The notes under the pieces are model-generated. The model made no database searches. It was not told the DNA's origin and worked only from the letters and a program-made list of their open reading frames with translations. The position numbers and the translations under genes are program-made. A stretch of 52,805 nucleotides of DNA from Octopus bimaculoides. Its lineage: Eukaryota. Of the stretch, positions 354 through 52,805 are shown in pieces. The DNA is taken from contig NC_068981.1 in NCBI RefSeq assembly GCF_001194135.2, forward strand, positions 9,144,821-9,197,625, read 5' to 3'. Numbering within the stretch: the first letter of the stretch is position 1; every line of letters starts with the position of its first letter.

Positions 354-3300
354 CTGTTTGGGGGAATAGAAAAGAAACATTTATACAGAAATTTAAGTTT
401 CTGTTGACAATTGAATTTATACAGTCACATTTATACAGTCAGTCTGACTTATACTAGCAGACTTATACAGTCTGTCAGGTTTTATATGGTCATAAAGCCA
501 AAAAGTGATGTTTAAAGTTTGAATTAAGCACTAACTGCATAAACTACTTTTAAGTCCAATTTTGACCGAAATTGACAGAAAATTTCTTCACATTTGTCTT
601 GTTGCATATTATTTTGGAATAATCATAATTTAAAAAAATTTTAATTGTGAATAATTGAAGATAAATGTTGCTAATAATTAATGGTAGATAGTTTTTTTTT
701 CTTTTATCTGGTAGAAACAAATAGCCTCTGTTTTATATTTAAGCTTTGTTTCAATAAGATTTACAGTGTTGATTTAAACATATTTTAATTGATTGCCCTG
801 GATTTGTCTCCAAGTAAATTTTTTTTTATCAATTTAAGACACTTTTGACTGAATTAGTTCAATGATTCTGGGGCCATTCCTTAACAGAATGAGTTTCAGT
901 AAGTTTATTATTGAATGGAATTATAAAGATTTTTAATCTCCCTATTTCCTCACACCCAACACAGAAAGTTCAGTTTCTAAAATCATTTTTCCTCTCTGTG
1001 TGATGAGGTAAAGACATGTTTCCCTCTCTAACGGTTTACAATAACATTTAAGCTACAAAACACTATAAAATATTTACCAAATTGGTAAGTTGCTCCACAG
1101 CTCTGTACTGAGAAGAATCTTAAGAGAGCTGGAATTCTATAATTCCAGTTCTTGGTCAAAGGTTCTCACTAATTTAGGTCCTAATCCAAACTGAAGGATT
1201 CAGGATAACTAAGCTTATATACACATAATTTATGCCATTACATAACGTGTTAAGTAATATATAATTAAGAATGTAATTAAAAGTTGACAATTTAGATATC
1301 TTTAAAATTCTTGAAAATAATGTAATTCCTATTAAAGAGCCTTACCTCTTCAATAAGTTCCATCAAGTCTTTTAAAAATCCATGTAATTCTTCATTTTCA
1401 ATGCTGCCATTTTTGTCCTGCAAAACAAACAAAAAAATATATTAAAATGTGAAAAACACTAGCAAGATGATTAATTTATATATCTATCGATCCATCCATC
1501 CATTTTATCTATCTATCAATCGATCGATCCATCCATCAATTCGTTCGTCCATCTATCAATACACACACACAACATACACACACAAACACACATACATACA
1601 TACATACATACATACATACATACATACATACATACATACACACACACATACATACATACACACACACACACATACATACATACATACATACATACATACA
1701 TACATACATATATACATACATAACTGCAAGACTTACGCTAAAATTGTTAGCAATGCCAAAAAAAAAAACAGCTGGAATTAATAATAACATTTTCAGCTGA
1801 TATAAGAATGGAATTTGTCCAAAAGAAATATCCATATTTTATTGTTGAATGGGCAAAATCAGTCTCCCAGATCCAAAACCTGTGCATCAATAGTGTCACT
1901 ATCTCTCCTCCTGTCCCACACAAAGAACGCCGCAAATACCTAAGCATTGATGAAAATATATCATACGAAGGTACTGTGAGTAAAGATAGAGTGACCCAAG
2001 AATATTATACCAGACTAAGAAAAAAAATTGCCAATCGGAACTCTTCTTTTACAATAAAACAATATCCCACAATGTATTTGCAGTGGAAACAGTGCTGATC
2101 CCAACATTTGGAATACTTGACTGGTCTGTAGAAGAAATCTATTCCATAAATATTAAAACCTACAAGATTCTAACATCAAGTGGAAATCTCCACAAAAATA
2201 GTGATATCGACAGGCTCTACCTACGAAGAGATAAAGGAGGTAGAGGCTTGAGATCAGTGCAGCCTTCGAATGTCGCAGAGTCTCTCTCAGACAGCATTTG
2301 CTAAACAACAACAGTTACGAGACAACCATTTATGTTATTTCAGTAAAGGTTTATGGGGAGGTGCCATAAATCGAATAGTTCTAACCAGTCTGAGCCAAAC
2401 GGATTGATGGTATTATCCACAATGAATAATCTTGCTTCGCGTGTCATACCTTAGAACTGTGCTGAAAACACCTTAGAACTTTGTGTGTTGGAGCCTCGTA
2501 GTTTTGTTCTACAACGAGAATTTCTGTGTCCCAGGTTCTGACAACTATAGCACTTTTTGTTTTTTAAACGGTCAATCCTTTTTGTAGTGTAGGCCTCCAC
2601 AACTATAACACGGATTGGAGCCTGACACTTTTTTTTTTGTACTTCCCAGGACGACACATTTTAATTTTTGCAGAGTCTTTATCTTGTTTTTTTTTTCACA
2701 TCATGTTTAAGATTTACCATAGTCTGACATTCTTCTGCGATTGTCTGTAGAGATAAATCCTGGTTCGCTTGCTCCATTTTGGAGAGAATCCTTGCCCGAA
2801 TTTCTCTGTCTTCAGGTGCTATAAGTCCTTGCACGAAGATAAGTGATTTGAACGTATCCTGAGTGAGATCCTGGAGTTTGAAATTTTCGCACATATGGTT
2901 GAGTACTCCGGCGCAGGCTTGCCGAACCTGGTATCATTGTACCAAATTTGGTACTTTTTCAAATTTTTTCGCTTTATGTAAAAAAAATAAGTTTACCGCC
3001 AATGTAAGTGAACGATGTAACAATAAATAAATACACGTTACTATGGACAAACTATTTTATATCAAAGTATATATTCCGACATTTTATAACGATGCAGTTA
3101 ATTGGTAGCTAATTAGTAGCTAGTTGATATAGAACGTGTTCAATACGTGTATCGTACTTACCATCCAATCTCGCCGGCTTTCCGCCTCTATTGCCAGTCA
3201 GTAGCATGTTTTATACATAAGTGTCAAGTGTTTCCTTACTATCTCGTTAAACATTTATCAATTACGAGTGAGTTATAATCCTCATGATGAGCAAGAATAC

Positions 3301-51485: not shown

Positions 51486-52805
51486 CAGGCTTACCAAACG
51501 TATTTTGATGGAAGTACCAGATTTAGCAAAATAAAAGTAACAAGTTTGATATTATTTAGGACTAAAAATATTCTTTCAGCTGCAGCTGAAGAATGTGGTA
51601 ATGATAGGAGCTGAAACATAAAGCATGATAAGACCGGATAACGAACTTCGTCTCCACATTTTTCCTTAGAAATTTTATATCAATAATCTTCTGGTTTGGG
51701 AGCTTCAGTTATGTCATTGTTATCTTGAAGTTTAAGTTCTCCCCATTCTTTATTAAGAGTTTCAATCTGACTCTCCTGAGCGATATTTGGAAATTTGCAT
51801 GCCAGAGGAACAATTGAACTTGGACCATTGCAGTCACGAATACTAACTGGGTCTAGTGCCTCTAGAAACTTCAGATTACAGAAGAAATTGTGTGCAAAGA
51901 AACGCTGAACAAATTCCTTCCCAAGGTGCACATAAAAGTTTAATGTTTTCACATGAAATTCTTTCAATTCAGTTGTACTAATAGATGAAGCTTTCTTTAT
52001 GTAGATGCTTTCAGATTTTGCTCCTCTCTAAATTTCAGTTATGGAAAGATACACTGATGGATCATTGATGTTAATTTCATGTAGCTCTTATTTTTTCACA
52101 ATTTCTTTTTTAACAAAATTGCCAAGAATTCCCTTCACAGTGCATGTAATAGATTTGTGCATTCTAAAGCTTTCTGTTTGGAAATCTAAGTTCGACTTAA
52201 TTATATCTAGCAAAATATATGCTAAAAATGCAGAATACATCTCTGTGATTGGATTTGTTAAAGACCTCAGTACAAACTGCACTGTTGTTATCTTCAATAG
52301 CAGCAGTAGTAAAGAATAACACAAGAGCAGGCCACTGTTCTAATATTCTTTTGACAACTTGTTCTAAAGGTAACCACCTTGTACAACTTAATATGTAATA
52401 ATTTATGAGGATGCGATTGAGTAAATGCCTGAAATTCTTCATATTCCTGCAGTCTCTTTGGGCTATTTGAGAGGAATGAATATATGCTTCTAGCAAGTTC
52501 TTCTATGCCTTTGATGCACAGATATGAATAGAGTGACAGACACAACCCTGAATACAGAGAGGGGGAACTTTGTTCTTCAGTGATGCCTGCACACCTCTCT
52601 TCTGTTCCACCATTACACTAGCATTGTCACTGGAAAATCCTATCAACTTTTCAAAAGGGATATCATTTAAAGTGAAGGATCTTTCAATAGAGGAAACAAT
52701 TCCATTAGCAGAGCAATCCTTGGCTTCCAAAAGAATTAAATAACAATATTTTTTTGAGTGCTACAATCATAGAATCTGGTTAACAGAACAAGCTGTTTTT
52801 TTTTT
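51486..52805 (-). mobile_element. hAT DNA transposon, 3' half (catalytic core, dimerisation domain, TIR)
   Basis: LIGFSSDNASVM; CVCH (CxxH); RWLPLEQVVKRILEQWPAL; C-terminal LSLPHSSAAAERIF; TIR CAGGCTTACCAAAC at 51486 after TSD CGCCGGAG (51478-51485). Confidence 0.9.

Follow-up and report, generated by a model that had tools for sequence, protein, structure and literature searches.

Judged from its junctions, a hAT transposon has inserted once into the gag region of a Ty3/Gypsy retrotransposon, thereby duplicating the 8-bp target CGCCGGAG. The resulting composite is visible at two places in the assembly of Octopus bimaculoides, which lie in opposite orientation and ~48 kb apart in introns of the calbindin-32 gene. 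The DNA analysed here, referred to as the window, comprises 52,805 nucleotides of chromosome CM046601.1 (assembly GCA_001194135.2, ~9.145–9.198 Mb). The left copy contains the 3' part of gag, the target site duplication (TSD) and the first 1.25 kb of the hAT element, and stops at position 4165. The right copy is located on contig T (47684–52805) and contains the 5' part of gag, the TSD, the last 1.19 kb of the hAT element, and 127 bp of a part that is common to both copies. We lean towards a real second, inverted copy, a reading whose chances we consider to be about even, over a misplaced allelic contig, to which we assign a clearly smaller probability.

The window is a slice of the chromosome record, and its left end adjoins a gap of 1100 N. 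One internal gap (3335–3707) falls within the left hAT piece; further gaps are found at 29288–29752, 32047–32270, 37138–38060, 39560–40379, and 47403–47683. The last of these (281 N, no strand) divides contig T from the remaining window and is what sets it apart. In the preliminary description, T had been named a terminal contig. It does end the window; however, as the window is cut at the 1100-N gap on its left, T need not be the end of a scaffold. For sequence comparisons, a total of ~190 kb was used, which consisted of the window and three O. bimaculoides loci. L003, a 103-kb locus of an O. bimaculoides chromosome, ends at window position 46749, which is ~0.9 kb before T. An exact look-up of 20 ORFs of the window, taken from the junctions and from T, in a collection of 15 billion proteins yielded no match.

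The 5' part of the gag remnant (51126–51477, plus strand) carries one frameshift and several stops. In tblastn searches it aligned with residues ~31–156 of the Gypsy polyproteins P0006, P0008, and P0029, and the Pfam domain DUF7083 was detected in it with 48 bits. The 3' part (2418–2905, minus strand), which was located by means of tblastn and ORFs, corresponds to polyprotein residues ~154–356 and includes a CCHC zinc knuckle. Relatives of this gag gave 1239 database matches, and the long ones contain RVT_1, RT_RNaseH, Integrase_H2C2, and rve, in that order. DUF7083 and this domain order agree with the previous assignment of the host as a Ty3/Gypsy-type gag. Only ~0.85 kb of gag have survived: pol (PR-RT-RH-IN) is absent, the window covering no more than residues ~31–356 of the polyproteins used as rulers, and in a self-comparison of the window, neither locus proved to be surrounded by long direct repeats that might represent LTRs. 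LINE fragments adjoin the gag remnant on both sides.

The right junction reads ...GATTTTATCACCTC / CGCCGGAG (51478–51485, plus strand) / CAGGCTTACCAAAC (51486–51499). The left junction, read on the minus strand, is ...GTTCGGCAAGCCTG (2927–2914) / CGCCGGAG (2913–2906) / TACTCAACCATATGTGC. The 8-mer CGCCGGAG occurs twice in the window, compared to 0.11 expected occurrences, and both occurrences are at the junctions. Likewise, the terminal motif CAGGCTT(G/A)CC(G/A)AAC occurs twice (0.18 expected), and within the window the two sequences are confined to positions 2906–2927 and 51478–51499. If the flanks are joined and a single TSD is kept, the resulting empty site (...NLTKNEEEDFITSAGVLNHMCENFKLQDL...) continues the gag frame. 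The rebuilt frame aligns with 30 Ty3/Gypsy relatives without a gap at the junction and without any indel; for example, DFITSAGVLNH is matched by DFITYAGIVNR in a relative. Measured on the polyprotein rulers, the right flank extends to residue 156 or 155 and the sequence of the left flank sets in at residue 155 or 154; the overlap of two residues is due to the TSD. It had been stated that the same 8-bp TSD is found at both ends and that removal of the hAT element leads to a seamless gag frame, and both statements are borne out. As the TSD and the terminal inverted repeat (TIR) motif are unique to the two junctions in the window and the gag frame is seamless, the origin of both loci from one insertion event is supported at the level of sequence. 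The objection that independent insertions might share this junction by target preference finds no backing: the flanks of two other family copies, admittedly a small sample, are unrelated to gag.

The 5' part of the hAT element, which encodes the N-terminal portion (2914–4165, plus strand; TIR at 2914–2927), ends at 4165 or possibly at 4167. The 3' part encoding the C-terminal portion (51486–52678, minus strand; TIR at 51486–51499) was delineated by tblastn with P0001–P0005 and has a decayed reading frame. Its dimerisation domain, which is encoded at ~51500–51680, matched Dimer_Tnp_hAT (PF05699) with 22.9 bits (E = 7e-5), the Pfam gathering cutoff being 21.4. The TIRs have a length of 14 bp and are identical at 12 of these positions; the terminal motif also heads the two other family copies. 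The consensus of hAT TIRs is often quoted as YARNG; here, the fifth base is a C instead of a G. The hAT pieces of the window align at 36–89% to proteins carrying DUF4371/PF14291, and the pieces' own RNase-H-like DDE region reaches no Pfam model. An intact transposase ORF was not found in either part, both of which contain many stops and frameshifts. The 8-bp TSD, the 14-bp TIRs, and a domain score above the cutoff confirm that the element had rightly been regarded as a hAT transposon.

The hAT family is multi-copy in the O. bimaculoides genome (L001, L002), and the right part is 88% identical to L002 at the nucleotide level. L001 and L002 are collinear with both sides of the gap 3335–3707 and possess only ~160–200 bp at this place; the length of the gap is therefore probably over-estimated. 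The complete element has a length of ~2.3–2.45 kb. In L001, L002, and contig T, the hAT sequence is uninterrupted at the equivalent of position 4165, where it is broken in the left locus. Moreover, the alignments with P0004 and P0005 pass from the left copy (3716–4167) directly into T (52801 down to 52157). By these alignments, T holds the natural continuation of the left hAT piece.

The stretch 52679–52805 (minus strand) is the reverse complement of 4039–4165 at 125 of 127 positions. An identical stretch of 117 bp (4049–4165) is part of this overlap, and the copies differ at an A-run, which reads A8CC in one and A10 in the other. This corresponds to the inverted overlap given in the preliminary description; the premature TAA listed there as common to both copies is a trivial consequence of the 117 identical bases. 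Contig T and the window finish in the A-run, 127 bp into the common stretch. The notion of two complementary halves thus holds for the left copy, which is truncated at 4165, but not for the right one, which merely reaches the end of contig and window. The A-run is naturally variable in other family copies, and the form seen in T is therefore plausible as a genuine variant and does not stand out as an error. Among 90 tested contig ends, only one showed an overlap with a distant sequence, which argues against a routine artefact of this assembly.

The sequence following the breakpoint (4166–4318, plus strand) is not related to hAT. It consists of 57 bp, which do not occur a second time in the ~190 kb compared, followed by a (TACG/TACA)n microsatellite and A10. 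A search for TSDs, tails, or microhomology around the left copy gave no convincing direct repeats, and neither a poly(A) tail nor a TIR-bounded edge was found there. An 8-mer (TTGAAAGA) is present at 4157–4164 and 4328–4335 and a 13-mer at 4038–4050 and 4372–4384; both may be due to chance. The insertion of another transposable element (TE) at 4165 was considered as the cause of the break and rejected: from 4166 up to the exon at 7050, the remaining hAT sequence does not appear.

The calbindin-32 gene was identified by a homology search with its ten concatenated coding exons; the same search with the last exon alone gave no match. All ten exons are located on the minus strand and are collinear on both sides of 4165. 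Compared to calbindin-32 from O. vulgaris/O. sinensis (P0156), the spliced exons are identical in 259 of 262 residues, with 0 gaps. The left composite lies in the intron between the coding exons 7050–7106 (upstream) and 1349–1420 (downstream; both minus strand), which had been numbered 9 and 10. With respect to the gene, the T composite lies upstream and precedes the first coding exon of the window by at least 11 kb. The gene covers a range of 172 kb in O. sinensis and of 169 kb in O. vulgaris. In current calbindin-32 gene models at this locus, the first exons are wrong. The left locus is correctly placed, as its contigs carry the exons in the right order and on the right strand, and it is identical in the chromosome record CM046601.1. 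An arrangement in which 1–4165 belongs to the right of T was rejected; it would set the exons 1349–1420 and 204–353 on the wrong strand.

The position of T was assessed by means of a LINE that continues across the gap 47403–47683. Two diverged LINE pieces (46415–47402 and 47882–48540, both plus strand) flank this gap in the expected order. They are ~570 bp apart, based on the estimated gap length, compared to ~740 bp on the uninterrupted copy LINE B. The 198 bp of T that adjoin the gap (47684–47881) have no detectable LINE homology, and the sole candidate for a TSD of the gap-spanning LINE was a 13-mer, which is wrongly positioned. Close relatives of the two pieces are absent from the ~190 kb compared, and a repeat-induced join is therefore unlikely. 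Given these LINE pieces, T is probably located where the assembly puts it. In contrast to what is required of a haplotig, T aligns to the primary sequence at one end only, namely by the 127-bp overlap. Beyond the overlap, T has no match in the window or in L003, and a second gag or a T-like sequence was not found in the 103 kb of L003. The left copy is seen with both flanks, including exons, and the right copy with its left flank only. The continuity of the LINE and the finding of a lone overlap among 90 contig ends favour a real duplication over a misplaced haplotig.

At about even chances, we therefore regard both loci as real, the left one being a recent local and partial copy whose common part was collapsed in the assembly. 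According to this model, the T locus would hold the entire composite and the copy in the intron would be its recent, partial, inverted duplicate; alternatively, the composite may have been duplicated as a whole and the intron copy truncated afterwards. A short-read assembler would then have kept a single version of the common sequence, namely that at the left locus, and we propose that T for this reason breaks 127 bp into it, at the hypervariable A-run. The O. bimaculoides assembly consists of 713,915 contigs and is smaller than the genomes of relatives (PMC10700109). Size and contig count fit better to collapsed repeats than to retained haplotigs. For O. bimaculoides, no direct figure on assembler or heterozygosity was found in the literature. 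Against a second real copy, it has to be noted that the 117 identical bases would suit alleles as well as a recent paralogue. Likewise, the edges of the left copy showed no signature of a duplication, and the continuity of the LINE depends on the estimated length of the gap and does not extend to the 198 bp beside it.

The less probable but serious alternative is a heterozygous indel combined with a misplacement. In this case, one allele would carry the composite in full length in the intron flanked by 7050–7106 and 1349–1420, and the other allele, which was followed by the assembler, would have lost at least 5 kb beyond 4165. T would originate from the undeleted allele and would have been scaffolded 43 kb off and in the wrong orientation. 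This explanation is attractive because a single biological event suffices, the overlap is identical in 117 of 117 positions, and a flipped T fits exactly at 4165. Furthermore, T otherwise shares nothing with the window, as expected for a pure insertion/deletion difference, and octopus genomes may be quite heterozygous (1.22% in O. vulgaris; PMC10700109). However, true read-pair links would lead to a flipped 1–7333 and not to 47402, whereas the actual join to 47402 has an estimated gap of 281 bp that is flanked by collinear LINE pieces. In addition, no other contig end among the 90 displays haplotig-like redundancy, and the size of the assembly is not inflated.

The other explanations are improbable to different degrees. 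If contig 3708–7333 were chimeric, 4165/4166 would be a false join, and a flipped T plus further sequence would belong in between in both haplotypes. A microsatellite that lies 50 bp beyond the junction, on its right side, and the strong fragmentation of the assembly are compatible with such an error; yet the junction contains neither a repeat nor a shared k-mer, the subsequent 57 bp are unique in the ~190 kb compared, and the position of T beside 47402 is left unexplained, which makes this reading an improbable one. Scarcely better founded, and in our view slightly more doubtful still, is the assumption that the block of gag and hAT is itself a repeat family, spread for example by retrotransposition in trans or by segmental duplications, and that the two loci are independent members that were broken differently. 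The hAT family is indeed multi-copy, and relatives of the Gypsy gag are abundant (1239 matches). However, both additional hAT copies that we examined lie outside gag and do not adjoin CTCCGGCG, L003 is devoid of any second gag or T-like sequence, the gag remnant lacks pol and LTR, and, in a genome of 2.3–2.8 Gb, only a very large family would be expected to place two unrelated members within 48 kb of each other in a single gene. Finally, an inversion of 4166–52678, fixed or polymorphic, with a breakpoint in hAT and a breakpoint duplication of 127 bp, would formally create the observed order gag3'-hAT5' / 43.5 kb / gag5'-hAT3', but is hardly credible: the eight calbindin-32 coding exons inside share their strand and a collinear order with the two exons left of 4165, their spliced product agrees gap-free with its orthologues, and the uninverted state would mean a broken conserved gene, so that a simple inversion is excluded, as had been concluded before.

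For quality control, the consequence is that at least 1.7 kb are represented once in the reference, although they stem from either two loci or two alleles. The nested insertion further provides a relative age order, with Gypsy first and hAT second. A real second copy would amount to a recent and small inverted duplication within the gene, on which it has no apparent effect. It is conceivable, though very improbable, that both copies form a young inverted repeat pair ~48.6 kb apart, which brackets the eight calbindin-32 coding exons and could drive recurrent inversion. Non-allelic recombination could then give rise to a polymorphism by which this neuronal calcium-buffer gene is switched off in part of the octopus haplotypes, and the end of T, where the 3' part of hAT leads into the common part, would be compatible with either arrangement.

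A nested TE insertion plus an assembly effect is ordinary and of a known kind under either reading. DNA transposons inside the coding region of LTR retrotransposons are routinely used for ordering TE activity. As in other nested insertions, a hAT element that has short TIRs and is flanked by an 8-bp TSD resides here in a Gypsy gag, and the frame is restored if the element and one copy of the TSD are taken out; the host is a gag remnant of 0.85 kb and the composite is found at two places, and the kind is not unusual. As in collapsed duplicates and haplotigs of short-read diploid drafts, a run of 127 bp leads into sequence that was assembled once, and the break occurs at a variable homopolymer. 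However, a haplotig normally matches its allele to the left and to the right and is either positioned next to this allele or left unplaced, whereas contig T has a one-sided alignment, is 43 kb away and inverted, and lies beside a matching LINE piece. A hAT element that borders a local rearrangement or duplication is reminiscent of alternative transposition by Ac/Ds. In these events the breakpoints are at the element termini; the present one falls in the middle of the transposase region (4165), the TSD and the gag flank travel with the fragment, and the element is decayed. A LINE (48989 to ~51000, plus strand) is located just upstream of the composite in T, and 5' truncation yields copies that end at an arbitrary internal point, which recalls LINE-mediated 3' transduction, 5'-truncated retrocopies, or L1-type target-site deletions. 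In contrast to such products, neither a flanking TSD nor a tail of poly(A) or microsatellite type, where its edge would be expected to carry one, was found around the left copy, and its origin by means of a LINE is only an idea.

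At the right locus, gag on the plus strand (...CACCTC) is followed by CGCCGGAG (51478-51485) and CAGGCTTACCAAAC (51486-51499). At the left locus, read on the minus strand, ...GTTCGGCAAGCCTG (2927-2914) leads into CGCCGGAG (2913-2906) and TACTCAACCATATGTGC. The order of gag, target-site duplication (TSD, 8 bp) and terminal inverted repeat (TIR, 14 bp, 12/14 identical) of the hAT element is the same at both loci, as stated in the preliminary description. The 8-mer CGCCGGAG occurs exactly twice in 52.8 kb (0.11 expected from shuffles), and the terminal motif CAGGCTTRYYRAAC exactly twice in the window (0.18 expected). 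For reconstruction of the empty site, 300 bp of either flank were joined and one copy of the 8-mer was kept, which yielded the open stretch ...NLTKNEEEDFITSAGVLNHMCENFKLQDL.... A search of 1.84 billion representative proteins, run without a profile, returned 1239 matches to the 178-residue join; each of the top matches aligned as one block that spans query residues 1 to about 174. When the 30 top-ranking ones were aligned with the join in MAFFT, the junction was ungapped (DFITSAGVLNH versus DFITYAGIVNR and similar). Measured against long Gypsy polyproteins as rulers, the right flank reaches subject residue 156 in P0008 or 155 in P0029, and the left flank begins at residue 155 or 154; this overlap of two residues is the duplicated target.

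The ungapped gag junction, the ruler overlap, the unique 8-mer and the terminal motif support well the earlier claim of one hAT insertion. A target preference of the family, which would undermine that claim, found no support: two further copies (L001 and L002; 80-88% nucleotide identity), fetched from O. bimaculoides chromosomes, begin with the same terminal motif and have unrelated flanks with neither gag nor CTCCGGCG, and no sign of a preference was seen in this small sample. The domain order of the long gag relatives (DUF7083, RVT_1, RT_RNaseH, Integrase_H2C2, rve) is the Ty3/Gypsy arrangement. Only gag residues of about 31-356 are present (51126-51484, plus strand; 2912-2418, minus strand), and neither pol nor an LTR was found around them in the window; "Gypsy" here therefore means a 0.85-kb gag remnant.

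The N-terminal part of the transposase lies at 2914-4165 (plus strand) in the left locus, and the C-terminal part runs from 52805 down to 51486 (minus strand) in the last contig of the window, contig T (47684-52805). The reading frame is broken many times; the C-terminal region matches the Pfam hAT dimerisation domain with 22.9 bits (cutoff 21.4), and the middle aligns to DUF4371-bearing proteins from O. bimaculoides and Tribolium. Alignments to the hAT-related proteins P0004 and P0005 pass from 3716-4167 directly on into 52801-52157. Since L001 and L002 are both unbroken across the point equivalent to 4165, it is contig T that holds the natural continuation of the hAT; the left locus leaves the element at 4165, possibly 4167. 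Comparison with the same two copies showed that the sequences either side of the gap 3335-3707 belong to a single element in collinear order and that the missing portion is about 160-200 bp, not 373. The picture of "two halves" described previously is partly a product of contig and window ends.

Self-comparison of the window gave one long unique match, 4039-4165 versus 52805-52679 (inverted, 125/127), and both mismatches fall in the terminal A-run. This run reads A8CC versus A10 in the two copies, and A7 without C or A10CCC elsewhere in the family. The form in contig T is a plausible natural variant, and such a run is variable enough to differ between alleles as well; the difference does not discriminate between alleles and paralogues. 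The left copy has a sharp right edge (4165/4167), beyond which come 57 unique bases, then a (TACG/TACA)n run and A10. The base after GAAAGAT (window 4166) is thymine in the left copy and L001, cytosine in contig T and guanine in L002; the left copy may therefore reach 4167, with one substitution from contig T there. Short direct repeats occur nearby (TTGAAAGA at 4157-4164 and 4328-4335; TAAAAAAAACCCA at 4038-4050 and 4372-4384), which could either be fortuitous in such AT-rich sequence or be left over from the event behind the 4165 junction. For the left edge of the left copy, the counterpart in the other copy is absent from the assembled sequence. No flanking direct repeats or tail were found around the left copy that would mark it as a retrocopy, such as a 3' transduction, truncated at its 5' end, from the LINE that immediately precedes the composite in contig T.

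The host gene is calbindin-32, whose EF-hand exons occupy minus-strand positions 36217-36128, 34725-34636, 34123-34037, 18163-18107, 13293-13210, 9219-9165, 8588-8541, 7106-7050, 1420-1349 and 353-204. Spliced, the ten exons encode 262 residues, of which 259 are identical, without gaps, to residues 43-304 of the calbindin-32-like protein of O. vulgaris/O. sinensis (P0156); the other three residues are those of O. bimaculoides calbindin-32 XP_052830120.1. Although both P0156 and P0276 contain the 59-residue last exon letter for letter, a word-indexed protein search missed it; a search of this kind can overlook short queries. By these coordinates the left locus is inside the intron between 7050-7106 and 1349-1420. 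Contig T lies upstream of the first of the ten exons, at a distance of at least 11 kb; if the gene structure resembles that of its relatives (gene range about 170 kb), this position would fall inside the very long first intron. The conserved true first exon (O. vulgaris/O. sinensis residues 1-41) was found neither in the window nor in L003, the chromosome locus of XP_052830120.1. The N-terminus of XP_052830120.1 is doubtful, its first 54 or so residues being translated from DNA that precedes exon 36128-36217, and so is that of XP_014777336.1, whose first 41 residues are a LINE ORF (44919-44797); the model regions concerned are window 36128-36749 and 44797-44919 and L003 10001-10622. At the end of exon 353-204, ...SLSLQK is immediately followed by a TGA stop codon (204-206, minus strand), and a possible GT splice donor overlaps this codon. 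With read-through the product has 304 residues, like O. vulgaris CAI9715678.1; with splicing to an exon 46 kb further (L003 92808-92933) it has 345/357.

Contig T is isolated by a run of 281 N (47403-47683), which like the N-runs 29288-29752, 32047-32270, 37138-38060 and 39560-40379 is absent from the preliminary description. Over positions 1-46749 the window agrees with L003 (CM046601.1:9088634-9191569, reversed) at 100%, gaps included; extended beyond this confirmed part, the match would place the whole window at CM046601.1:9,144,821-9,197,625. Its left end adjoins a 1100-N gap (L003 46750-47849) and all gaps inside are below 1000 N, which suggests that the window was cut out at large gaps; the right end may also adjoin one and need not be a scaffold end. 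The introns are filled by six or more diverged LINE fragments of a single kind (reverse transcriptase and C-terminal CCHC-like region) on both strands (1808-2304, 4700-6400, 38900-41300, 44040-45130, 45967-48540, 48989-51000), several edged by (AAT)n or other microsatellites. A reverse-transcriptase part (46415-47402, plus strand) lies directly left of the 281-N gap and a downstream part of the same kind (47882-48540, plus strand) 198 bp right of it, spaced by about 570 bp versus about 740 bp on the uninterrupted copy 1 kb further on. This continuity fits a true join of contig T to its neighbour without proving it, as the gap length is estimated and the 198 bp show no LINE homology. Close nucleotide relatives of these two pieces were not found in about 190 kb (window and three fetched O. 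bimaculoides loci), which makes a repeat-induced join at 47403-47683 unlikely.

With an inversion, a displaced left part and a transposon insertion at 4165 excluded as set out below, two contexts of the shared stretch, one joined to 4166 onwards and one to 52678, must exist in the animal, either as alleles or as paralogues, unless contig 3708-7333 is chimeric. Among a misplaced haplotype, a mis-scaffolded contig and a real duplication, as proposed previously, we lean towards the last: there is roughly an even chance of a real second copy whose shared part was collapsed in assembly. At 2.34 Gb and in 713,915 contigs (PMC10700109), the O. bimaculoides assembly is of small size and highly fragmented, which fits collapse of repeats. 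A heterozygous indel with a misplaced contig is a possible but distinctly less probable reading: read-pair links of an other-allele contig would be expected to lead to 1-7333, flipped, with no reason to land beside 47402, and haplotig-type redundancy is uncommon, the right end of contig T being the only one of 90 contig ends in the window and three chromosome loci that overlaps a distant place. A chimeric contig 3708-7333 is improbable, as the junction is followed by 57 bp of unique sequence and no cause for a chimera is seen, and membership of the composite in a multi-copy family is marginally more so. A simple inversion of 4166-52678 has next to no chance: the order gag3'-hAT5' / 43.5 kb / gag5'-hAT3' is formally its expected product, but the gene is conserved, and the eight exons inside continue the order and share the orientation of the two left of 4165, which upholds its earlier exclusion. 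Placing the left part right of contig T was rejected because exons would fall on the wrong strand, and a transposon insertion at 4165 because no remaining hAT sequence appears between that point and the next exon.

Whichever alternative holds, the arrangement, in introns of an intact gene, reflects transposon history of an ordinary kind or a usual weakness of a short-read draft assembly. It differs from alternative transposition of the Ac/Ds type, which does not fit because the breakpoint here lies away from the hAT termini.
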